Shown here in pieces: positions 818 through 56,100 of a DNA stretch of 64,000 bases. Origin of the DNA: Paragordius varius. Its lineage: Eukaryota > Animalia > Nematomorpha. A model generated the notes under the pieces. That model was not told the DNA's origin. It worked only from the letters and a program-made list of their open reading frames with translations, and did not search any database. The translations under genes and the position numbers were made by a program. The stretch spans positions 11,842,001-11,906,000 of the forward strand of contig OZ176054.1 in the NCBI GenBank assembly GCA_964247055.1, given 5' to 3'. The number at the start of each line of letters is the position of its first letter. The stretch's first letter is position 1.

Positions 818-3800
818 ATGCTGATTCCCTTTTCGTCTTTCGACAAAACATACAAATCTATAACTAAAATTGAAAATATAACAAAGTTTAAAAATAGCTT
901 TGAAATTGCCTTAACCAATGATAATAATCTATCAGATTTTCGGAGAAGAAAACTGTTGGATGTTCAAAAATTAACGGGAGTTGTTATCACTATGATATTA
1001 CTCTTAAGTATGCCTCTGAAATATGCCGAAACATTGGCATTGTATAGCAACGGTCTGTATGGAAAAATTTCAACAACTAATCCAGCCTCTTCCAAACCTT
1101 CTTCCGCACCAAAAACATTAATTAAACGGCCAAGTGGTAATGCTAAAACTGGGGACAATACCAACAAAAAAACCATGTTTGATGATTACTTTGGATTTTC
1201 AAATTCCATTTCAGATTCATATCCACAATCTAACGAAAGATATTCAATTCATGATTCCCAAACATCTAATCAACATTTAGACTCTTATAATCAACAAAAT
1301 CAACAACCACCTTCAAATACAAGAAATGAAGTCGCCGTTTTTGATAGAAATGTTGGAGGAGTGCGTATAAACAATGCACCTATCATTCCATTCGTGATTA
1401 AAGAAATGAGACCAAATTGCATTGAATTAGATATCAGAGCGTCTGGTTCTCCTACCCCAAGCGAACTATATCGAAAACAAAATATCTGGCCACCAATTCT
1501 AAAACAATTATTTGCCCTCTCAAACGATGAAGTGTTGAATAATCAAGGCCCGAATTTCGGTAATGAAATTATTAAATCTCCTACCTATAGCGTTGACATG
1601 ATGTATGATAAGCTAAAGAAAACGCAATTACCTGGCTTGATTTTTAACACAAATCAAAATATAATTTTTAAATACGATTATCATCGCTTCATGACAAAAG
1701 TAATAATTTATGTTATAAAAGTTTTCATATAATATGAATGACTTAAATTTTTGGATGGGAAGAAACCCAATTTCAAAGATTAATTAAAACAGTTGAGTAA
1801 CGCCTTTTTAGAATTAAAATTACTCTTTACTTTAAAGTAAACAGAATTTTTACTCCACAATACATAGCGCTTTTGTAAATTTTTATTAAAATTTGGTATA
1901 AATTTAAATTACGTGTATAAATTGAAAACATTTATACTTTTTTTGCCTTAATTTTAAAATATATATATTTATATTATATCTGCAAATATCCTTACAACAC
2001 CTAACATAGGTGTAAAATAGTTTACATGAAAGAAACTTAAACAGTTTAAATAGTATAAAATCTCGTAAAAAATTAAAATTTTATAGATGTAATGATGAAC
2101 GATGGAGTAGGTTATTGACATTAATTTAACATTTATTTCTCACATTTTTTATATATTACCTTTAAAAAAATTAAATTAATTTTCGCAATACAAAAGGGGT
2201 TTGAGATATAAATTACCCCTACTAAATTTAAATATCTCCATTGCATACTGTTTATTTGAGTTAAGGTATCAGGTATTACCATATATTTATTTTTAGTAAT
2301 AAAAAATGTTTTCATCTTTTATTGATAGATAATACTATGCGTTAAAGTTCAGAAAATACGGTAGCTTCACCTCTAATATTGTTAAATGTATAATATATTT
2401 CTTCTTTGCGGTTGCAAATGATTCATAATTAAAAATAAGGTAGCAAACCAATACATTACTTATTTTAGTTCCTAATATATGAACACCCGTAAACCAGGCG
2501 TATTCTTAAGTTTTTACAGGTTTTTCGGTAAAAAAACATGTAATATTGAAAGGAACTTAATTAGTTATTCAATTTAAAAATTGCGCACCGGCTCCTACAT
2601 ATTTCACCCATCTTTTAGGTAATATTGGAATGCCGTGCCACAAAGATTCAAGCCATTTTTCAACGTCTTCGAAATTATTGAAGTGCTGCTCAGCGATGGT
2701 GTGTCACATTGATGCAAAGTTGTATTAGTCAGACGGAGCCAGGTCTGGAGATTTAGGGGAGGCAAAAGAATTAAAGTTATTCAGGTTGGTTTGGCTGTGT
2801 GACACTGAGCATTGTCATGTATCAAACTACTTTACCTTGTCTTCGGTCGTTTTTCGGTTTATGCTTCAAATTGATCCTTTGTTGGGGATTCTTTGTGTAT
2901 AAAAGGCCTCACCAAGTGTTTAAAGAACACAAAATATCGCTCAGGTCTCACCAAACACAAAGCACGGTCTTCTTGCCGAGTTTGTGTCGGACCGGGTTGG
3001 CTAAAAAGACACGATTTTCTAGTTTGGATTTACAAAATAAAGCCATTTCTGATCACCCCTCCCAATCGGATGGAAAAATTTTTTGTGACGTTGAAATAGG
3101 ATTTCACAAGTTGTGATTCTCTATTTGACGTTTATTTAAATTATGTGGGCCCATTTAACGATTTTATTCGTCTTTTTCATTGCTCGCATATTGATTGTTT
3201 TTTTGTGATACATGCGGTGCTTTAGCCAATAACTGTTGTTAAGTGTGATTTAGATCATCATTCAATTACTCTTGCACTTAAGCGTCTCCGCAGTTGTGTG
3301 GTCTACCCGAGCGCCCACACTCTTTCACTAGAAATTACTACTTTTAAAATCAAACCAGGTTTCACATGTGCTAATCGATAAATATTTTTTACCTGCAAAC
3401 GAAAACTTTCATCAGCCTTTTACTTTTGATGGCAATGGGTGCCGTAAACGCTCTTTTTTCAGTCACAAAATTTGACCTGATTACCGAATGTTAAAATATG
3501 CTAGTTTTCGGTGAACTCAACTTGTGTGTGTTTGTCGTTCAGATGAATAAATTGAGTGTGTAATTATCGTCTGCGTACTTTTTGCTGATGTCTTCTTTTA
3601 GTTAGACCGGTAATAACTTATGAATACACCTGGTACAAGTGATAATCGCGGATTTTAATTTAGATGCATTTGCCAATAGCCTAATAATAGGTGGTGATTA
3701 CAAATTTTTATAACTTAACAAATTAAATTCATTTCAAAATTAAAATTTTTAAAGTGCTAAATTATAGGAGAATTTATAGTAGGAGAACACTTAAATGGTA

Positions 3801-5632
3801 ATGTTATCTCGTATACATCATTACATGTGGACGTCTCTCATCAATAGTAATCATTTACTAGTTTAATGAAAACTTAAGTTCTAATATAATCTGTTTTCTA
3901 AAAGAATGTGGACTTTATATATATTATACCACATTATTAACTCATGAATTCGACGCTTGATTTTACATTCTTCCCTGTTTCAAAATAGTTTTTATTTATA
4001 TTTAAAATTAATAAATGTCCATTCTAGCCCTATATAACCTAATTTTCTTATTAATTTAAAATATCCATGATTGACATATGTTTTTAACACTTTATTACCT
4101 TTTCATTTTCTTGTTCTAGTTTACCTTTTGGGGTATTTTATATCCCAAAGCTCAATTTTAATAAACTATGGTTTTAATTATATTAGTAAAATTTAATATC
4201 AAACATTGTTCTCATGTATTGGATAAAACAGCTTTTATTTATTATAGTTTTGTGACTTCTAGTGTTTAAAACTGAGACAACTACAAAACACGATTGAAAC
4301 GAACAGCTGATATTCAAATCATAATCTATCAGGTGGAAAATGTAGCGTGAAATCTCCTTAAAGTTCATTTTCTAACCATAATACATTTATTTGCCTGTTG
4401 CATTAGCGATAAAAAAAATATAGAAAAAAATGGCGGCAAAAAAGTTTGTGATGAGGATGTTTTACATACATTTTTTAAATTTTTTTGTACAATGCCCTTA
4501 AAAAGCTAAAGAAGGCCAATTTTTAAATTCGGCTTAATACCTTAAATAACATTTGTGTGTGTTGTTACAGTCGAGGTTGACTTTTTGAAATATAAATAAA
4601 ATTTTAAATAACTTTTAAGATATTTAAATTTCAAATAGCTCTGGTGTATATAAAACTAACCCCAAAGATAATGGAGTGTTAATTTTATTTTAAGTTATAA
4701 TAAAATTTTGTAACTCCATTTCTCCAAATCATAGTCAAAATGAAAAATCAGTTTTTGGTGGATTTTGTTTTTTGCAACTATTTCTCTCGTTTAACCTCCA
4801 ATTTTCAGATTTTAGAAGCTTATCATTCCTATTCTATCAAGATATCTATTGGTATTTTAAAATTTCCACTATATTAAATATGTTGTTTTAGAGCTGTTCA
4901 CAAAAACTTAATCAACTCTCCTTTATGATTGCTTTCGAATGGCCAGGATGCCAACTCAAAGTTTTAAGAGGTTTAATTGTGGATACATTGGACAAAAAAC
5001 CGAAAAACGATTTGCCTCCTAAAGATAGAAATACTTATATTAGAAACGGTTTGGATTTCAACAATCCCACCAGCAATCATGTTAAATTTGAATTACATAA
5101 AGTGAGTAGGGCTTTAGACATAACCCTTACTGCAAAGAATCCTTTAGACGATGATATCAATGGCAAACTTGGAGGCTTAGCAGCTTTAGCGGTGAAGGCG
5201 GGTTTCTCTTGGGTTCATTACCGTGATCGAAATTATATTCATGTTTCGGTTAGGGCAGGTTGGATAATTTAAAATATTTACAATTTTTTGACAATCTCTT
5301 AATAAATTTCTATATTTGGTAATGAAAAATTAAAATTTTACGGACAAAAAGTAAAAATTAGAAGACAAATGTGATTTTAAAAAGGGAGGCCTAATTTTTC
5401 AAACCTGAATTTTCCTACGTAAACTCTATAATTATAATTTATATAAATCGAATGCATTTCGAAAGACAAAACGATGAGTTATATTTTAAAAAAATCTAGA
5501 TTTAAACTATAAATTGTCTTTTTAAAACAATATTTCTCTTTTAATTTTTATGATTTTATGTATAGTTTCAATTGTATGACATTATAAATATTAGATTTGA
5601 CTGAAGATTCCAAACAATGGAATAGAATTTGA
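818..5632 (+). CDS. hh: Divergent hedgehog-family protein, Hedge (N-terminal signalling) domain only, about 428 aa; exons 818-1699, 4892-5258 and probable 5595-5632
   Basis: Exon 1 has PFVIKEMRPNCIELDIRASG (cf. SHH [20 protein letters not shown]) and LIFNTNQNIIFKYDYHRFMTK (cf. [25 protein letters not shown]). A GT at 1700 and AG at 4890-4891 join in phase 0 to SCSQKLNQLSFMIAFEWPGCQLKV (cf. [24 protein letters not shown]), followed by LHKVSRALDIT and LAALAVKAGFSWVHYRDRNYIHVSVRA. A phase-1 donor at 5259 can join AG 5593-5594 to give DLTEDSKQWNRI-stop, with AATAAA at 5901. Exon 3 is the least certain part. Confidence 0.9.
2460..3715 (+). mobile_element. Possible LINE APE-endonuclease relic split by the mariner insertion
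   Basis: Removing the mariner joins LVPNI*TPV (NIYAP-like) roughly in frame to QVIIADFNLDAFANSLIIGGDYK (IIGGDFN-like). Only short motifs support this. Confidence 0.3.
2494..3633 (-). mobile_element. Degenerate mariner (Mos1-like) transposon in hh intron 1
   Basis: About 30-bp imperfect TIRs (CCAGGCGTATTCTTAAGTTTTTACAGGT; ACCGGTAATAACTTATGAATACACCTGG followed by TA). The minus strand has decayed transposase motifs FHPIGRGDQKWLY, HDNAQCHTAK and KSPDLAPSD. Confidence 0.85.
4100..4543. repeat. Dispersed repeat family E (AAAATGGCGGC core, ends ...GGCTTA(A/G)TACCTTAA); related segments near 24900-25170, 43860-44030, 44290-44656, 48500-48760
   Basis: Visually matching blocks, e.g. gttttgtgacttctag and aaaatgtagc at 4250-4330 and 44420-44525, and a shared terminal GGCTTA.TACCTTAA. 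Confidence 0.6.
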
Positions 5633-5899
5633 ACTGCAACATTCCTAAATTTATCCAAATATTATTTATGTATTTTCTTGGGGAAATTAGTTAGTTATTA
5701 TTTTACAATTACCTATACAATTTAATAATTTACAATTATCCCGTCTAAAATTACGATAAAATAGTTATATTCATATAGAAGATCAATTCGAAATAAATCA
5801 AATCATATTTTATTTCCTAATAGGTAGGTATAAGCCCCTCGTGCACTACTGTGTATTAGTCGACGATTTCATTTTAGTGCATTTATAAATATTTTTCCC

Positions 5900-6830
5900 C
5901 AATAAAAGAAAAGGATGAATAATCCTACAAAAGTTGTTACCTTTAAGAGCTAATTTTATAGGTGAGTGCCCTACTTATAAAAATCACTACTTGACTTTAT
6001 TTGATTTAAATGTGAAATAACTATAATTACTATTGAAACTATATATATATATATATATATATATATGGTCTTATAAGTTTTTCCGAAAAAAAATTACACG
6101 CCACTTATTTTTTTTATATGGTGGCATATTTGACATTGGCTGTGATCCTGATTATAGTTTATAAGAATACGTTCAAATTTTTCCTTTTTCTTTACTTAAA
6201 ATCATTATTGATATTATATAATCTTATGCGAAATGATGCTTCGAGGCCACATTGTTTTTATATGGTGGCGCATTTTACAGATAGAGGAGTCCTACCTACG
6301 GGTTAATTTCAAAGGTACACTAAAACGAGGAATAGTTGGATCCATTATTAAGTTCGAAGGGTTTTCCGAAAAATTGCCTCAAACCCATATTACTTTATTA
6401 TGGTTGCATACAGTATGAGTGAGTATACATTGAAAAGTTATTAATTACTGCCAAATAGTAAATACAACAAAGAGCAGTATTATTGGCTTATAGTTTTTTT
6501 TTCACTTTTTCCTATTATTAGCCCATAATAATTCTCTTTGCTGCATGCATATGCTATTTGGCAATAATTATTAACTTTTTAGCAATATATACTTACTCAT
6601 ACTGTATTTTATAGAGGGCGGATAGTGCCCAGCGGCTCATCTAAAAAAACGCTCAACTAAAATTATTGCCTTTATGCGGAAAAAATAAACCATAATTTAA
6701 TCCATATAATTTCATAACTTGAGAGAAAACCAGCAAAGCGATTTTATTAAAAATGGTGACATATTTAACATATGGTGGATCCCTACCAAAAGTTAATAAA
6801 AAAAATCATTAACTTTCATTATAATGTGGT
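5900..6830. repeat. Degenerate repeat family F (ATGGTGGCG / TTGCCTTTAT motifs), related to the 45650-46750 tandem array
   Basis: Recurring tatggtggc at 6117, 6261 and about 6770, and attgcctttatg at 6665; the same motifs recur in 45650-46750. Confidence 0.45.
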
Positions 6831-6870
6831 AAAATCATGAAATCAATATGGTCAAAGTGTTGTTCATATA

Positions 6871-7181
6871 TGTACCATTTACTATTCAAATTTACCCTTT
6901 TACATTTCAAATTCACCCTTAAACAATTCAAATTCCCCCTCTAACAATTTAAATTTCCCTTCAAATAATTATATGTTTTTTAAAATTAAAATTTACCTAT
7001 ATTTATATATATTTTGGAAAAATAAAATTATGTTTTAAATTAAAATAATATTGAAAAATAATAAACTATGTAAAGATAATTTTACATTAATAATGAGTTA
7101 TATTATATGGTTCGAAAACACATAATTTATCTTAAGGGTAATTTGAATTGTTCAGGGTGAATTTGAACTGTAAAAGGTATA
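6871..7181. mobile_element. MITE family A copy (TACCATTTAC termini, subterminal AATTCAAATTCACCCTCGAAC repeats)
   Basis: Inverted termini TACCATTTAC...GTAAAAGGTAT, tandem 20-21 bp units at both ends and a shared AT-rich interior of about 180 bp. Confidence 0.85.
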
Positions 7182-7675
7182 TAAAATGGTGTATTTTGTA
7201 TGCCTAAATCTTTTGACACCCTGTAAAATTGTTGGCTATTAAATTTTTATAGTGTCTGGTTTGTATATCGGCTCTTTTTACAAAGGGTGTAACTCTACCC
7301 AGCAGCCAGTTTGAAAAAAGCGCTGGGCTAAAATTTTTAAAATTGGTTAGGTCTATAAAATTATATTTGGGGACTAAGTTTTTATTTTGCAGCTAAACAC
7401 AGGGGCTGATTTTAAAAAACCGACTATGTTCGGCTAAAACGAAAGAAATTATAAAAATTTTATTCTTAAATTTAAATGAGCCACCTATTTGAATATTTTG
7501 TCTGTAAGGGACTTCTCTTTTCTTAGAAACTCTTATTTCCGACGGGGTGGTGTATCGAGCCACAAAATATAAAGGTGGTCAAATATAGTCGGTACATTTA
7601 TAAATGGATTAATTATACTTTTAAACTTAAATGGGTCTACACATTTTTTAATGTCTTAAAGGCAGCATTTTACAT

Positions 7676-7713
<38 letters not shown>

Positions 7714-7978
7714 CTTTAATCCGGGATATTTACTAATTGATAAATAATTGCAATCGGACATTTTCACTTAAATTTTTTAGGAAATCGGTAGTTAGTAATT
7801 TATTCAAAAAGATTATAACTGTTAAAATATAGGTGCGAAAATCGACCTATTTTATACAGACTTTCAACAGTCGATATATTAACAAAAACCTAAAATACCA
7901 TTTTTCAGAAGTCATAGATCCGACTCTCCAGTTCAATATCTTCTGAGAATCTCCAATTCTAATATAGATATGCGTTTA

Positions 7979-9259
7979 TTAAACAGGTATCCAAATTTGC
8001 GGATAATGTAGCATATTCCAGTCCCTTACGATTTCAGGGTAAAATATAATTGGACCGTTATGGTCATTTGAATGGGATGATAGTCCATTTATGTAATTAT
8101 TTATATTACTTTCGTTTCGATTATCAAGGTAAGCCGACCACCATCCAAATGTCCCATGAGTTATGATACGTACATCTGTTTGAGATAAAATATTTAAATC
8201 TACAGCAGATGTTATATGCTCTTCTTTCACATTATCTTGCAATAATAATGGTTGTTTTTTGCGTTTTAGATTTCTAAGAGTTTGCCCGGAACAACCTATA
8301 ATTTCATACTTTTGGAATAGGTTATTATTATAAACTAACAATTTTTGCATCCAATAATTGACACTATCTCCACATATGAGGTAAATTGGTTTGAGATATG
8401 TATCATTATACTTTTTTAAACTTTCTTCGTTTTGTAAATATTTGTTGGCCCGATCAAAGGCGCGCATTAGAAAATTTATTACATTCAATTTTTTCGTCGA
8501 TTTATTGTGTTGTCGATTGACAACGGCCTGTACAATATTATCCCTTCCTCTAATATGTACGCCAATTAAAATAAATTTTTGATTCAGATGTGGTTTTGAT
8601 TCAGAAATCTCGGTATGTTTTAATTTATCGATTTTAAGCGAAAGATTTTTCATCCGTAGGTGTGTTAAATGCTTGACATAAGGTGTAAATGTGAAACTTT
8701 TCTTGATTAATTTGTCCAATATGGTATCATGCGAAAAATATAGGTAAGAATTTGGATAACCAAAAAATAAGCGTACATTTTGAAACAAAACTCTATCCAG
8801 AAGACTTGGCTCATACGGTTGATGTAATTCGTATGAAACGATACTTAAAATAGTTTGATTCTTTTTATTTTTTGAGTTTTTAACGATCCAAAGATCTGTT
8901 AGAGCATTTGTTTGTTTTACTTTTGTGTCGAAAAAAAAATGTGACAAGTTAATATGCTTTCCAGTATTTCCTCTTTCCGTTAAAAGTTGTGGCTTAAACA
9001 CCGCTAAATTTGAGTTAGCATATGACTCCAGCGCAAGTTTATAAGTTAAACTTTTTAAGGCAGCTATTTGAAACATTAGATTACCAAGCCTTCCACTAGC
9101 TTGCCAGGCTATATATTGAGGTTGCTCCTTAATAATACTATGGTGTAACCGGAATTTCAGAGTACAAAGAGTTAGTAGCATCAGTATTAATATAATAAAA
9201 GATTTGATATGGGAAGAGAATATTTTGCGTTTTATAGTTCTTAATAATTTTAACCACAT
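7979..9259 (-). CDS. Alpha-1,2-fucosyltransferase (glycosyltransferase family 11), intronless type II membrane protein, 426 aa
   Basis: Basic cytosolic tail, TM segment IILILMLLTLCTL, and GT11 motifs GRLGNLMFQIAAL, IGVHIRGRD and DLNILSQTD...GTFGWWSAYL. Confidence 0.9.
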   Translation of the reverse strand: MWLKLLRTIKRKIFSSHIKSFIILILMLLTLCTLKFRLHHSIIKEQPQYIAWQASGRLGNLMFQIAALKSLTYKLALESYANSNLAVFKPQLLTERGNTGKHINLSHFFFDTKVKQTNALTDLWIVKNSKNKKNQTILSIVSYELHQPYEPSLLDRVLFQNVRLFFGYPNSYLYFSHDTILDKLIKKSFTFTPYVKHLTHLRMKNLSLKIDKLKHTEISESKPHLNQKFILIGVHIRGRDNIVQAVVNRQHNKSTKKLNVINFLMRAFDRANKYLQNEESLKKYNDTYLKPIYLICGDSVNYWMQKLLVYNNNLFQKYEIIGCSGQTLRNLKRKKQPLLLQDNVKEEHITSAVDLNILSQTDVRIITHGTFGWWSAYLDNRNESNINNYINGLSSHSNDHNGPIIFYPEIVRDWNMLHYPQIWIPV

Positions 9260-9489: not shown

Positions 9490-12198
9490 TTAAATAGTTA
9501 TATTATAGGATACAAATCCATTATTGGGAATAGTTATGGATCTGCTATAATTTCGATTTCCAATCACAATCTATATTGAAAAAATATTCATATCTGAAAT
9601 ATTTGTCTGTTTTTATAAAAAGGTTAAATAAATTTGTTATATAAGAATTTCAAATATATCCAAAATTCGATCAAAAAATGCTGTAAATTACCGTTAAGTT
9701 ATAGAAGCCTGGAAGTAGGATTCTATGATATTCACCGTTCTTACTAACGTAAGTGGGATGTCTTCTCCCTTTGACAAAAACTTGGCCCCCAGAAGATGAT
9801 ATAATACCATTTTTATCCTTTATAAACCCAGAAACACCTATTGAAATAAAAGTTTCTCATAATTTAAAATTTAGTATAGTAAAATTGAAATTATACAGAC
9901 AAAAAGTAAAAACATAAAGACAAATATTTTTTTGAACCGCCATACTTTTCTAACCTTGATTTTTGAATGATCTAATCACATCTGTAATATGATTCCATAT
10001 AAATCTCTACTGATACTTTACCATTTAAAACGATGATGGGTTATATCAATAAATTCAAGTTTAAAAAAATATGGTTGACTTTTGAAAAACTTTTTTATCT
10101 TTATGCCGATCCTTTTTGTCTGTATAATTAAATTTTTCCTATAATCTATACCTCTTAAAGATGAAAGCAAAGATTGCTTTAGGGATTCTTTGTTTTGATT
10201 CCAATAAGGTAGCAAATTGCCTTGTGGGTAATGTTTACAAGAGACTTCGAGTGTGAGCTCAAATACACCATGATAAATATAATTGTAATCTTGCATACCT
10301 CCTGTAAAATATTAATAAATAAAAAGATTTTATGGCAGAATTCACAGGAATTTGGGTTTTTTACAGTTTTTTAACAGATTTTTACCAAAAAATTAAAACA
10401 CATTGAGGTTAAAGTTATATTATTATTATTATAAAAACTTGATTAATTGTACCTTGTATGGAATACCAAGCCACACCATTAGTTATTCCATCGGTAAAAC
10501 GTTGCCCACAAATACCTCTTGGGATGTCAGGATGTGACAATGAATAAACTTTTGAAATGTTTTTGAAGACATCATCATCCGGAGAGTTATAATATCTACT
10601 GGCTAGAAAGTATGAGCAGAATTTAAGGTAAAAAAAATGTGGCAATTACACTCAATAAAAATTAGAATTATACAGACACGTAGAAACTAAAATATATTTT
10701 TTCAAAAAAGACAAATGTAATGATTTTTTAAATTATTTTGGTTCGCAAATTACACAATAGAGAGGTATAAATTGATAAACTCAATTACAGTATGCATTCT
10801 AATAGTTGTTTATTTCACACTATATTTGGGCAATTTGCAACACAGTAGTGTAAACAACAAAATATTGAATAAAATAAACAAAGTAATGTAAAGAGAAAAA
10901 ATATTTAACTTTTTTTCTTTCCATCAACTACTGTGTTACAAGACCAACTATAGTATGAAAAAAGCAACCATTAAAGTGCATATATATATACATAATTTAA
11001 GTCGTAATTATATGTAGTTTATGTGGTAAACAATCAGATAATATAAATGTGGTTGTCTTTATGGTACAATATTTTAAATATTAGTTTCCACGTTTTGTCT
11101 GTATAATTTCAATTTTTATGTATTATAAGTTATTTTGACTCTTTTTAACAGTATAAAAAAATGTACATTGCTAATTTAAATTAGTTTTTGCCAGATAGCA
11201 TATGCAGCAAAGATATAGCAATAAAAAGTGAAAATATAACTATAGCCCAATTATATTTCCCTTTGCTTTACATGATATCTGACAATAATTTACTAGAAAT
11301 GTATACTTACTCACACTGTATACATCTGAATGAATAAATTGTTAATTACCTATGTTTGGAGGTTTATTATCATACGGATAATTTACGACTAAGGCACCAC
11401 CATGAAATGATAATGAGAAAACGAACGGCCATTCATCTAACCAATCCATAATAGCTTGAGTTTCTGGTTGAATTTCTTCACTGTTGGGTTCAAAGAAGTC
11501 GGGGAAGTTGCGATTTAAATCGTACCCATTGGCATTATATCTATTTTGTTTGATAATTAAATATATATAATAAATTTTTTAAATTTAAAGCTGTTTGCAA
11601 ATAGACCGCAGGCTAAAACATACTATAAAATGGAGTTTTGATTTTTATGAATTACCGAGTGATGTCCTCATATCCATCAGGGTTCATAGAAGGCAATAAA
11701 TGCAAGATAGTTTTATCAAACACATTAGACATTTCACGTAATCCATTTTGTTCGAGCAAGTATTCAGCGAAATGCAGTAAAACTTCTTTCCCAATTGGCT
11801 GTAAACAATTTGAAAAATATTAGATTTGAATTTTTTTTGAGTTGTTTAAATCGGAATTTAATATATCCAACCTCGTTCCCATGGATATTAGCGACAAATT
11901 TTACGTGTCGATAACCTCGGCCCTTAGATTTTTCTGGATTTTGGCTTCCTATGGCTAAGACCCATAGTGATTTCCCTAAATTATTAATTATATAAATTAA
12001 CGCATTAAGGTAATTAAAAAAATAAGTACCTCTAACACTTTTGCCAATGGAATAAAGGTAGGTTTGGTTGGGAAAACGTTCACTCAGGCCAAATAAATAT
12101 TGTTTAAGGTCTTCATAAGAATGATAATTGAAATCCAAACAATATAAAGATGAAAATGACAAAAACTGGAAAAGACCAATAAAAAAAATATTCATCAA
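9490..12198 (-). CDS. CPM: Carboxypeptidase M-like M14B metallocarboxypeptidase, 377 aa; exons 12030-12198, 11872-11975, 11656-11798, 11350-11540, 10453-10602, 10152-10301, 9692-9837, 9490-9570
   Basis: Signal peptide then LDFNYH; Zn motif HGNE; PSMNPDG; DLNRNFPD; [13 protein letters not shown]; [16 protein letters not shown]; catalytic ELTLEVSC; transthyretin-like [10 protein letters not shown]. Exon lengths sum to 1134 nt in frame. Confidence 0.9.
9878..10140. mobile_element. MITE family C copy (TIR CAGTAAAAATTGAAATTATACGGACAAAACG-like) filling most of CPM intron 6
   Basis: Left agtaaaattgaaattatacagacaaaaag and right ctttttgtctgtataattaaattttt are inverted copies. The same TIR occurs at 5330, 10660, 11090, 21900, 28890, 31040, 36420, 49983 and 51580. 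Confidence 0.75.
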
Positions 12199-30699: not shown

Positions 30700-33600
30700 G
30701 GTTCTAAAACATTTATGTTTGAGTGACTTTTTATAAAATCATCATGAAAAGCTCATAATTGTATAATTGATATGATTTTTTGTGAAAAAAAGAATTTTAC
30801 CTTTCCTGTCCATTTAACACCTTTCCATATCGAAAAATAGCATACAATCCATGCAAATAATAAGGCGATTGCCAATTCCCATCTAACAATCCCAATGTTT
30901 TCAATGCCAGAACTTATTTGTAATACTCTTCGTCTGTGTTATCACAAAATATATAAACGTTTAATTTTACAAAGCATAAAATCCGATAGATTATTTTATA
31001 TTTGGAAATACCATTAGGGCCCCCTTAAAAAATCGCACGCAGTAGTGTAAAAATTTTAAGTAAACAGTCCAAACATAAAAACTGAAAGACAAATATTTTT
31101 TTCTCAAAAGAAACCCCATATATTTTTAAACTTTATTATTTTCCTATATAGAAAAGTAAGTAATTACAATTTCGATTTCATACTTTGAACAATGTGTTAT
31201 ATATAAAAAAATCAAAATTGAAAAAGTATATAGGATTATTTTAAAAAAAATATTTGTCTTCATGTTTTTATCTTTCGTCTGCATAATTTTAATATTAAAA
31301 AACGAAAGAAAATTCGTAAAACGAAATTGTTATGTGGTAATCAAAGACAAACACATAAAAAGCATTTTAAGAAAAATTCGTACTCCCAAAATTCTTTGAC
31401 GGGTGAATTAAATTTAGCAGCCGGGATCCACCGCGTAATTCCATACATCCTCGTAGCACATAATTCCAGCCGTGTATTCGTTGAAGGCGCTCGCCCATTA
31501 TCCATTGTTCTTAGGTAATCGGTGAAAGTTCTGTCTCCAGAGGCTAGGAGTCGACCTACTGTGGTACTTGTACAATTTAACAAGCGTTTATCATGATGTG
31601 TTAGGCAATAAGCCGAATTCCACCAATGCCCACACGCTTTCCAAGGCAGCTGTCGAGTTAGCGAGGCCACGAAATAGTAAACGGCATAACATAGGATTAC
31701 AATGTAATACACATTTAACCAACAAGACATTATGGCTGCAGCATACCCTACACCTTTTATCAAAAAAAGAGATTGTGAATGAATAGGTTTAGATATAGCG
31801 GTAATGATTTGATATGGAAAATTTAGTTTGTTTAAAATGGTGTTGTTTTACAGAAACAATTTGATATAAATAATCTTAAAATCCGGTCTTATTTTTTTTA
31901 TAGCCATATATAAAATCTTGTGTTTACCTTCTTAACTAACTCTTTACCTAAAAAGCCTTATGGGTTTAGATGGAAAAGATGTTTAATTTACCAATAAAAT
32001 TTGATTAATTATGTAAAATCATTCCAGATCTTACTAATTTATACAATTCAAACCTTTAAATATCGGACAAATTTTCCAAACACCCAAACCCCCAATCGAT
32101 AGGTATTGCCCCAGTGCGGTTTCCAAAAAGTACATTGGGATGCCACAAAAAAGTACAGCCATAAGGTAGGGTATAAGAAAAGCGCCTAAAACGAATAAAT
32201 AAATAGAAATCGATTTTTGTAAAGGATTGTTAATTTGTTTTAAAGGATAATATATGTTTAAAAAGTTAAAAAGCGAAAGGAAACTAGGTATCATATTTAC
32301 ATGACAATTCATATAAAAAATAATTTTCTACCTATTTGTTTGATTGGTTTGTTTTAAGGCGCCGGCGCACCTATTTAAATGTCGACACCAGAGAGAAAAG
32401 TATATTTGAAAGTATATTTATATTTTATAACTTTTTACTCATTATTTTTGATCTCACAAACATTACATGAAAATAACGACATATCTCCATATTATGTCAT
32501 TATTAAATATAAAAATAGCGTTTTCCGCTAATAGACATATATGGTTATTATTTGAAAATATTCAATTTTTCAAAGGACCCAAAAATATCTGCAAAGCCTA
32601 GTTTTTCATTAGGGGTTAGAAGTAAGCCGCAAAATACCCAGAAACCCTTTTTTAATACCAAACCTAATTTAAATATAGTCTAGAACAGGGGTAGTATAAC
32701 ACAAATGGCTTAGCGGGCGGAATTCAAAAAATTTGGCATTACGAATATTTTATTGGATTTAATTTATTTAATAATATTTGCTGGCCCAATGAAAAATTGG
32801 TTTGAAAATATTATTTGTACTTAAATTTCGTAATATTTTGCATTTAAAATTTCTGGCGAGCTGCGAAAATATTTAGAAGGGCCCCACTGCGGGCCGCGTA
32901 CTGGCCACCCCTTGTTTGGAATATAGTGCCATCCAAAATAACTGGTAGTAAATGTTTGAGACGCTATAGATTAAATATAAATTTTTTTAACAAAACCTAT
33001 AAACAATATAAAGATTTAATTATATCATTATAAATTTAACCAACAAATGTAAAAAGATATGCAAACTCACACTTTATATTTAATTTATCTTAAACGATTA
33101 AACAGGCATATCCCAAAATTTTATTCTATTACAATGATGACTGTTTAGGACGAACATTAAAATTGATTTCACTAATTGATGACATTTTGTTTATTATTAT
33201 AATACTATACAAATAAACTTTATGTTCGGTAAAATGGTATATATGGCCCTCATCAAAGAAAGATGAAACGATATATTTTATTTTTAGCGAGGTTTTTTGT
33301 AAAATCAAAATTGTATAAAAAATATATTTTATGCATCATAAATTTTTATGGATTTATCCATATTTGGTAACCAACAATTAATTAAAAATTAGGGAACATT
33401 TGAAAAGAAAAGAATAAAAGGATATAACCTTAAAGATTTTAATTTTTAGGATAGTATATATATATATATATGTATATATTTATATATATATATATAATAT
33501 AAAATATTTTTTATAGCTAATACAAAAGGTCACATATCGTTATTATAAAGATTACGCTTAAAAACCACAATCATATTTCATATTTTTTTATAAATTTTGA

Positions 33601-53900: not shown

Positions 53901-56100
53901 TCAATAAATAAAAAATCTTTCTTACATTTGTTTATGTCGATTGGCTCCACCAAATGTGGCCGAGAGTGTTCCGTTCATAGCCAATCCATGCTGAGAGGTG
54001 GATGAGGGTGCATATTTTGCCGATAAATTTCCAGCAAAAAGGCCTAAATTAAGACCTAAACCAGTTGATGGTGTAACATTAACAAGATTATTTGATGAGC
54101 TTGAAGCGATTATAGCAGTAGATAAAAAACTATTATTTGTATTGTTGTTGTGGTTAAGAGCATTTCTAGGTGTTGTACCAACATTATTTGTCGGTCCTCC
54201 CCCGAACCCGCTCAAATCGAGTTGATCGATAAGGAAAGCCGCAGAGTTTGAATTGGAGTTTGTAACATTATCTTTTGCACCTTTTTTAAGGCCACCTGGG
54301 CTACCTATTTTTAATATTGGTTATGTGTAAAATTATATATGCGACACAAAAAAAGTGCAAACACATTATTTTTGTTATCTGTCCTAAAATAAGAAGGAAA
54401 AGTCGATACTAACATCTTAGGTTAGATTTTCATGTTAAATAATTATAATTGGTTTGACTGTTCATTCACGGTCATAAGTAGTCATCATTGCCACAAATAT
54501 AAGTTATACGGTTAACTACAGGTTAACAGTTTAAATTGAATTTAATAGTTTTTAATATATTATAAACAATTAATAATTAGGTAAATTTTGGATTTCTATT
54601 TTTTCCATTCATCATATAACGGATCACAGTCCTGAAACCCTAAAGGCAAACGTTCATATAACATTCTAACAAATTATTTACCAACAAAGAAAGCTCATTT
54701 ATGGTTATTAAAATTTTTCTCGAAAAACTTCTTCCTGTTTTATATCATACCATAATCAAAAGTCTAAATATATTATACCATTTACACTTCAAGAGTGTCC
54801 TTGAACAATTCAAGTTGGTCCTTGAACAGTTCAAGTTGGTCCTTGAACAATTCAAGTTGGTCCTTTAACTTTTTTGTTTTGTTTTTAACTTTTATCAATC
54901 AAATCGAAAATAATTCGTCTATTTTATTGTTTTTAACCTATTTTCTATAATTTAACATAAATTTTAAATCGATATCAACTTTTAATCTTTGAAAAACCGT
55001 ATATCTTTATTAATTTCTTAAAATAAATTTAGATATTTATAAGATTTTAACACGAAATGAAAAATTATATAAGTTTTCTGGGTTATTTATTAAAATTTTT
55101 CATTAAAAACATTCAAAAGTCAATAATTTTGTTCAATTGAAAAAAAATAGTTTTAAACAAAAAAAAGTGGTTTTTTAATAAAAAAATTTATTTTAAATGA
55201 ATAAATATATAATAAATAAAGAAAATTAGGTTAATAAAAAATTAAATAAAAAAATAAATGCAAAAATTATGGTTAAATCAAAATTTATAAATTTTAAGGA
55301 CCAACTTGAACTGTTCAAGGACCAACTTGAATTGTTCAAGGACCAACTTGAATTGTTCAAGGACCAACTTGAATTGTTCAAGGACCAACTTGAACTGTTC
55401 AAGGACCAACTTGAATTGTTCAAGGACCAACTTGAACTGTTCAAGGACCAACTTGAATTGTTCAAGGACCAACTTGAACTGTTCAAGGACCAACTTGAAT
55501 TGTTCAAGGACCAACTTGAATTGTTCAAGGACCAACTTGAATTGTTCAAGGACACTCTTGAAGTGTAAATGGTATATGTTAAAGACATAATATTCTAATA
55601 CCATTGACCATGACATTGATAGATTGTTGGTTATTATGATGTGTTAGAAGTGTACTCATATTTATATCTCCAATAATTTTGAGGGCATCTTTACAAGCCG
55701 AATACATTCGTAAAAGATCTTGCCTTCTGGCCTCCTCTTCTGCACTCTCCTCCATAAGCGTATTCTGTAATTTATAATAAACATGCATTATAATAAGTAA
55801 TTTGAAACTGAATGAAATGCAATGTAATTTAAATATGGATTTATGATTAGAAACTTTGTCGAGCAGAAAGCAAAATAAAGTAAAAATATAAATTATGTAA
55901 ATGTTATGCAAAAATATGCAAAATATTTAATATCCTATAACCATGATAAAAGTAATCAGATATACCATATGTATATCCTGAAAATTGGGATATATGTGGC
56001 ACTTTTAAAAGTAATATTCTTTATGAAATGGATTAATGTTTAATTGTAACTTTTGGCATAAAAAATCTTTAACTAAAGGAGGGTTGACCTTAAAAAGGGA

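Follow-up and report, generated by a model that had tools for sequence, protein, structure and literature searches.

This study concerns a hedgehog (hh) gene of Paragordius varius (Nematomorpha) whose product appears to consist of the Hedge domain without the Hog half that follows it in canonical Hedgehog (Hh) proteins. The gene lies on the forward strand at 818-5632 of the window, by which we mean the whole 64-kb stretch of contig OZ176054.1 (assembly GCA_964247055.1) that was analysed and to which all positions refer; it is strongly AT-rich animal DNA with a G+C content of 26%. Three exons make up the gene, the first two of which share the Hedge (HH_signal) domain between them. Exon 1 (818..1699, 294 codons) begins with the ATG at 818 and is open up to HRFMTK, after which the donor GTAATA follows at 1700. 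The 3192-nt intron 1 (1700..4891) interrupts the frame in phase 0 at the canonical hh site before (R/S)C(K/S)xK and ends in the acceptor TTTTAG, while exon 2 (4892..5258, 122 codons plus one base) opens with SCSQK, contributes the second half of the Hedge domain and closes with SVRA and a single G. Intron 2 (5259..5594, 336 nt) is a phase-1 intron at the canonical hh site after SV(K/R)x plus G, with TATTAG as its acceptor. The gene is terminated by a micro-exon of 12 codons (exon 3, 5595..5632), which supplies the remainder of a split Asp codon, the residues LTEDSKQWNRI and a TGA stop at 5630-5632. Both GT and GC dinucleotides were missing from exon 3 when its sequence was read directly, and it therefore holds no conventional (GT or GC) donor for onward splicing. 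A pattern search located two AATAAA polyadenylation-type signals on the same strand in the putative 3' untranslated region, at 5792-5797 and 5901-5906. The original prediction for this DNA had proposed the exon 1 reading frame with its RFMTK border, the phase-0 intron before SCSQK, a read-through of the exon 2 donor that stops after GWII and the AATAAA at 5901, all of which were borne out by direct reading, with the signal at 5792 as a second one.

The exon 1 product is composed, in order, of the start codon, a hydrophobic signal-like segment, a low-complexity linker rich in S, N and Q, and the first half of the Hedge domain. Exon 2 alone matches the Pfam HH_signal profile (PF01085; E 7.8e-16, 58.6 bits, cut-off 22.1), and the last 120 residues of exon 1 match the same profile weakly (E 0.009-0.12, profile positions 9-46). 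The Hedge domain is accordingly real, split over two exons as originally predicted, and strongly diverged. Its Zn2+ ligands, which we take to be the equivalents of H141, D148 and H183 of Shh (mouse numbering), align with H, D and H in the window protein, namely the H of ELHK, the D of ALDIT and the H of YIHVSV. The core motifs (S/G)RALDI and AGF(S/N)WVHYR(D/E)RxYIHVSV are kept both here and in the Gordionus protein described below. The most hydrophobic segment of exon 1, LTGVVITMILLLSMPL (residues 52-67, 971..1018 on the forward strand), has its Kyte-Doolittle maximum at residue 52, is preceded by RRRK and probably serves as a signal peptide or signal anchor. The exon 1 open reading frame (ORF) contains one Cys only, residue 201, which is located inside the Hedge core; an N-terminal Cys of the CGPG type, i.e. 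a palmitoylation site after the signal segment, was not found in this ORF. Compared with Gordionus, the Hedge part of exon 1 carries an insertion of approximately 45 residues, and exon 2 has two lineage-specific loop insertions; these and the linker were taken at face value. Micro-introns were considered as the source of the exon 1 insertions and rejected, as the GT...AG candidates (31 and 59 nt, at approximately 1540-1600) are not multiples of three and their removal would break a frame that has homology on both sides.

When exon 2 was used to query 1.84 billion representative proteins in a full HMMER scan, the best match was a 216-aa protein of Gordionus sp. m RMFG-2023 (P0001), which has a 218-aa sibling (P0151) from the same animal; RefSeq names this Gordionus protein 'desert hedgehog protein-like' (XP_065325397.1 / CAK9290418-9). 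Against Pfam the Gordionus protein shows a complete HH_signal domain (profile positions 7-161 of 161, E 4e-38) and no other domain; it is made up of a signal-type helix and the Hedge domain, ends 13 residues past the intron 2 junction (SVKP) and is devoid of Hint. When this protein was used in a tblastn search, it matched the window with 51% identity over 49 aa at 1355-1483 and with 40% identity over 121 aa in exon 2 (E 1e-21), the identity of the two Hedge domains being 40-54%. Homologue searches by word index, whether started from exon 1 or from the Gordionus protein, yielded nothing new, the relative being detected by the HMMER scan alone. In the AlphaFold (AF2) model of the Gordionus protein, the predicted local distance difference test (pLDDT) score averages 81.5 and exceeds 90 through most of the core. 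The model superimposes on the solved chains of ShhN, DhhN, IhhN and fly HhN with template modelling (TM) scores, by target, of 0.8-0.9 at 37-46% identity, and its matches to VanY/LdcB folds are weak (TM approximately 0.4). The Gordionus protein differs from that of the window in its short N-terminus, where a Cys closely follows the signal helix (TTCGLSY), and in having neither the long linker nor the loop insertions. Full-text literature searches that combined nematomorph terms with hedgehog found no paper treating the subject; the Gordionus protein is present in public databases and, as far as we have seen, has so far gone undiscussed in the literature.

The Gordionus gene has the same architecture as the gene in the window, and the Gordionus loci resemble the window in their G+C content of 27%. 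Its exon 1 ends in DRYMSK followed by GTAAAT; its exon 2 starts with TCSEK after TTTATAG and ends in SVKP plus G, with GTTACC following; and its exon 3 is a micro-exon approximately 1.3 kb further downstream that encodes D-VEDRNPKWNSVA and then a stop. This terminal 13-residue micro-exon, DVEDRNPKWNSVA, is homologous to DLTEDSKQWNRI in the window, the two having in common the split Asp codon, an ED pair and a WN pair (D..ED...WN). The tail of the Hedge domain is thus short and of acidic-aromatic character. In order to judge this likeness, all 77 phase-1 peptides that follow an AG in 5261-7978 were scored against the Gordionus tail, as were 300 shuffled intergenic sequences. The peptide at 5595 came first of the 77 and scored 25; the runner-up among the independent candidates scored 8, and the shuffled sequences reached a maximum of 22 (0 of 300 scored higher than the peptide). 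The third exon of 12 residues and a stop, which had been put forward as the best candidate from the window sequence, is accordingly upheld by a homologous exon in a second species. If Paragordius and Gordionus are distant nematomorphs, we infer that the Hedge-only state would be older than the split between their lineages.

A Hog profile, in the form of a hidden Markov model (HMM), was built from 11 Hog domains, all of the Hh type, and run with all filters off against open frames of at least 12 residues on both strands. It found no match in the 64-kb window or in a 30.5-kb Gordionus locus that extends 10 kb to each side of the gene, the best E-value being 10. A control profile from which the wasp, sawfly and bivalve sequences had been left out, run in the same database, recovered the Hint exons of Sinanodonta (3e-47) and Trichogramma (6e-43), as well as most fragments of 25-40 residues at E-values of 1e-10 to 1e-3. 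The broader Pfam Hint model (PF01079) detected no Hint in the ten longest forward-strand frames between the gene and the convergent fucosyltransferase (FUT) ORF downstream, and neither a GCF nor a CFxG motif occurs in any forward frame of 5259-7979. It had been noted beforehand that no G|CF motif or Hint-like ORF precedes the FUT gene, and an HMM search of the window had been suggested; the motif, Hog and Pfam scans agree with the former, and the latter found HH_signal in exon 2 and no Hog on either strand. The absence of Hint from the gene, as read from the sequence, is supported, because the HMM and Pfam scans are blank alongside a positive control and because a second, distant species keeps the short terminal exon and its stop.

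For comparison, exon borders were read in two canonical hh genes, those of the wasp Trichogramma brassicae and the bivalve Sinanodonta woodiana. Each has a middle exon that opens at RCK(E/D)K in phase 0 and closes at SVKS plus G in phase 1, followed by a last exon in which a split Glu or Asp codon comes first and the sequence continues past GGCF to encode the complete Hint domain. The window, Gordionus, Trichogramma and Sinanodonta genes agree exactly in the positions and phases of their introns, so that the nematomorph genes are to be regarded as hh genes whose last exon has been cut from approximately 230 to 12-13 codons, and the stop codon falls at about the place of the Gly-Cys cleavage site of canonical Hh. 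In a maximum-likelihood tree of the exon 2 region the window and Gordionus sequences form a clade with support of 100/99 that lies inside animal Hh, and the nematomorph pair and animal Hh together stand apart from bacterial Hedge-like domains (P0003, P0085) with support of 93/99. The nematomorph genes thus do not group with the bacterial Hedge-like or LAS (M15) zinc peptidases, in the tree or by fold, the matches to the latter being weak. The stem of the nematomorph pair measures 1.15 substitutions per site, as against 0-0.3 for the branches of canonical Hh. Recent transfer of an hh gene from an insect host was considered and rejected, as the pair is not nested with the two insect sequences and has its own very long branch. 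Descent from a true hh gene, which the original prediction had argued from the introns, including the phase-1 intron after SVRA plus G, is supported by the mapped canonical genes, which share that intron site with Gordionus and the window, and by the Gordionus orthologue; the phylogeny of the Hedge domain against hh that it had proposed likewise places both sequences among animal Hh.

Based on these findings, we consider it probable that the gene is a nematomorph descendant of hh that has lost the whole Hog half (Hint plus sterol-recognition region) and has been kept by selection as a Hedge-only gene. In canonical Hh, cleavage at Gly-Cys and transfer of cholesterol are performed in cis by the Hint domain together with the sterol-recognition region. 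The product of the nematomorph gene would enter the secretory pathway by means of its N-terminal hydrophobic segment and would be released as a ready-made, 'pre-cut' HhN-type ligand that undergoes no autoprocessing; since no Hint and sterol-recognition module is present in cis, it would be free of cholesterol, as had been proposed for this gene at the outset. In the window species the product would probably also be without the N-terminal palmitate, because no Cys precedes the Hedge core in the exon 1 frame. Engineered HhN and ShhN that stop at the cleavage glycine are secreted, are released without Dispatched and are altered in range and potency, and the natural product may be expected to behave similarly, i.e. 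as a soluble ligand with Dispatched-independent release and a longer range. Independence of Dispatched can reasonably be argued by this analogy. Given its very long branch and the lost Ca2+-site residues, the protein may present a partner-binding surface that has shifted since the Hog half was lost.

Several observations weigh against this interpretation. The donor of intron 2, GTTGGA, is weak, yet reading through it adds only the four residues GWII before a stop. Two small RNA-labelled runs (X6 and X7, 24-30 Mb) gave no contig on the gene and say nothing on its splicing. In the alignment, the first Zn2+-binding His is replaced by Leu in Gordionus, where the three positions read L, D and H. 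The positions of the Ca2+ cluster, presumably E90, E91, D96, E127, D130 and D132 of mouse Shh, are deleted or replaced both in the window (FKYDYHRF, KVLRG) and in Gordionus (FRNEMDRY, KVMRG). Fly Hh likewise lacks the Zn2+ site, so that this site is not strictly a defining feature. Secretion is presumed from hydrophobicity, an upstream coding exon, possibly one that bears a Cys, may be present before 818 or outside the window, and an hh paralogue of canonical structure, or a Hint gene on its own, may lie elsewhere in the genome, beyond the DNA searched. Finally, any action on Patched is conjectural.

Among the other explanations, the one that survives best is that the gene is a derived paralogue, i.e. 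a fast-evolving Hedge-only copy with a new or minor role in genomes that harbour a canonical Hedge-plus-Hog hh gene elsewhere. A stem of 1.15 substitutions per site is the pattern that would be expected of a duplicate released from its former role, a canonical Gordionus Hh may be hidden under the representative of another animal in a library clustered at 50% identity, and a bona fide Hh exists alongside Hh-related genes in enoplean nematodes, members of the sister phylum (PMC2362128). Against this, the Hedge search brought up no further nematomorph protein among the 11 of the listed matches whose source names were checked, and both hh introns and the first residue of exon 3 have been retained exactly, in keeping with direct descent. 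On balance we regard the paralogue explanation as unlikely, albeit one to be taken seriously.

It is far less probable that a Hint exon exists and was missed, be it that it lies beyond the searched DNA, is too diverged for detection or forms part of an alternative long isoform. Such an exon might be entertained as the 3' end of the gene is predicted from DNA, the donor at 5259 is weak, and the Hog domains of nematodes are quite diverged from the Hint of the Hh type, from which alone the HMM was built. Yet both strands were blank at the highest sensitivity setting (--max) over the 58 kb downstream in the window and over 10 kb in Gordionus, the broader Pfam model was blank in the intergenic frames, the control of the Hog HMM recovered fragments as short as 25-40 aa, the convergent FUT gene begins 2.3 kb downstream, and the stop-bearing micro-exon is conserved in two distant species and has, in the window, no GT or GC donor. 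An assembly gap or artefact is also not the explanation, given that contigs from two public DNA runs cover 5199-5682, from exon 2 to exon 3, with zero differences from the window, and that the Gordionus assembly is independent. Two of the public runs (X1 and X3) are DNA-like, with a depth that is even through the introns.

Exons 1 to 3 are open and their splice sites are kept both in the window and in Gordionus; as the FUT proteins of the two lineages are only 32% identical, open exons in both argue against a pseudogene. Exon 2 varies at four sites in the public DNA runs, the changes at 4957 and 5002 being synonymous and those at 4916 (L>F) and 4935 (F>Y) conservative, and in run X1 a cluster of indels at 1520-1534 (+2, -1, -1) restores the frame. 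The pattern of these variants, small in number, points to a gene under constraint. That the gene is a decaying relic, a pseudogene that has lost its 3' exon and its function, could be argued from the high divergence of the domain, the lost Ca2+-site residues, the long low-complexity and loop insertions and the lack of visible expression in the small RNA runs, and is nevertheless most improbable, as neutral decay would have erased a frame in which the splice sites, the core Hedge motifs and the tail motif (D..ED...WN) are conserved across lineages so far apart.

In the same run, X1, the exon 1 linker is found in two forms over 936-1323, with 18 differences in 284 nt. The two linker forms and the indels at 1520-1534 mean high heterozygosity or two strains in a low-complexity part of the protein.

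The Hedge-only hh descendant favoured here can be set beside several known systems. With canonical bilaterian Hh, it shares a homologous Hedge domain, a three-exon structure and the same introns, and the window protein retains the Zn2+ triad. It differs in the lack of the Gly-Cys-Phe site, the Hint domain and the sterol-recognition region, and in an exon 3 of 12 rather than approximately 230 codons; the window gene is furthermore without the acidic residues of the Ca2+ site and without a Cys ahead of the Hedge core, and evolves far faster. Engineered HhN and ShhN are similar in that the window and Gordionus products end 12-13 residues past the exon 2/3 junction, the corresponding distance in canonical Hh being 10-11 residues, and are expected to be without cholesterol. 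In contrast to the engineered forms, the nematomorph product is natural and evolutionarily conserved, and its tail is unrelated to the canonical xSxxAxKSGG.

Hedgling, in which Hedge is joined to a vWA domain and cadherin repeats in sponges and cnidarians, is likewise a case of Hedge without a following Hog. It is a giant adhesion-type protein encoded by many exons (Nv 200640 has 3592 residues), whereas the nematomorph reading frame stops 12 residues into its last exon, and similarly in the second species; moreover, the animal is a bilaterian whose sister phylum keeps bona fide Hh. The two are set apart here by description rather than by a tree. No hedgling-type continuation into vWA or cadherin was encountered, as the stop lies in exon 3 and the Gordionus product of 216-218 aa shows HH_signal alone. 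The warthog, groundhog and quahog proteins of nematodes, in which Hog follows an N-terminus other than Hedge, also represent a derived remodelling of hh, and in the sister phylum (PMC2362128, PMC6956190). The outcome there is the reverse, since chromadoreans keep Hog without Hedge and the nematomorph gene keeps Hedge without Hog. Bona fide Hh has been reported in the enoplean nematodes Xiphinema and Trichinella, and Hog-only Hh-related genes in C. elegans and Brugia (PMC2362128). As chromadoreans have kept Hog, nematomorphs Hedge and enopleans both, Hedge and Hog were therefore split independently in the sister phyla. Bürglin (2008) described Hedge without Hog as a 3592-residue hedgling-type protein of Nematostella and a sponge expressed sequence tag (PMC2362128). 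Phrase searches of the literature for Hh proteins lacking Hint found only this paper, in which Hedge without Hog is limited to giant hedgling-type proteins. What we rate as new here is the presence, in a bilaterian phylum, of an hh descendant that is small, of the secreted type and confined to the Hedge domain.

Autoprocessing and the addition of cholesterol are treated as defining steps in the biogenesis of bilaterian Hedgehog, and the role of the lipid has so far been probed mainly by engineered truncations such as HhN and ShhN. A natural hh gene that ends approximately at the cleavage site and is conserved across a phylum would be the evolutionary counterpart of those experiments, and would indicate that the Hog module can be given up by a lineage in which the ligand is retained. 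The gene offers a test of the need for the cholesterol adduct, for Dispatched and for the lipid-binding interface of Patched, and adds a missing part to the history of hh in Nematoida, the clade of nematodes and nematomorphs. We put forward only tentatively, and as a doubtful possibility, that Nematomorpha have no hedgehog other than this Hedge-only gene, with a product that would be pre-cut, free of cholesterol and, in the present species, probably free of palmitate, in a mirror image of the sister phylum Nematoda, whose studied chromadoreans (C. elegans, Brugia) have retained the Hog half alone, and with a rewired pathway. In a bolder version of this proposal, the soluble ligand may be released into the arthropod host.

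Short high-copy repeats lie in intron 1 (4049-4639), in and around intron 2 (5231-5427, from approximately 5325) and in the 3' flank of the gene (6413-6600). Their summed contig depth in runs X1 and X3 is 50 to 1000 times the local background and loose contig ends are seen at their borders, including that at 5325; they look like MITE-type elements (miniature inverted-repeat transposable elements). The depth of intron 1 reaches 5 to 300 times background over 2473-3654 and 4049-4639. The former of these segments, at approximately 5-10 times background and with a G+C content of 32%, contains open frames of 68-105 aa that have no Pfam match, and is probably a decayed transposon. Between the hh and FUT genes, a 21-nt tandem repeat of approximately 3-4 copies occupies 6884-6970, with inverted related copies near 7127-7190.

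The FUT gene itself is an intronless ORF of 426 aa at 7979-9259 on the reverse strand, convergent on the hh gene and of the GT11 type. Among 5.8 billion proteins it has one significant match, which is from Gordionus (32% identity); this homologue is one of two tandem copies situated 420 kb from the Gordionus hh gene on the same chromosome. At higher coordinates, likewise on the reverse strand, parts of exons that belong to a gene for an M14 zinc carboxypeptidase occur within 10018-12198 (Pfam Peptidase_M14 at 10418-10645 and 11767-12198), and a gene for a sodium:neurotransmitter symporter (SLC6/SNF) is represented by one exon at 31344-31763 (Pfam E 1e-19). A 21-nt tandem array at 55226-55616, also on the reverse strand, is open in two frames, which encode NNSSWSL and EQFKLVL heptads, and an adjoining ORF at 55582-55911 shows a weak match to the dynamin GED domain.

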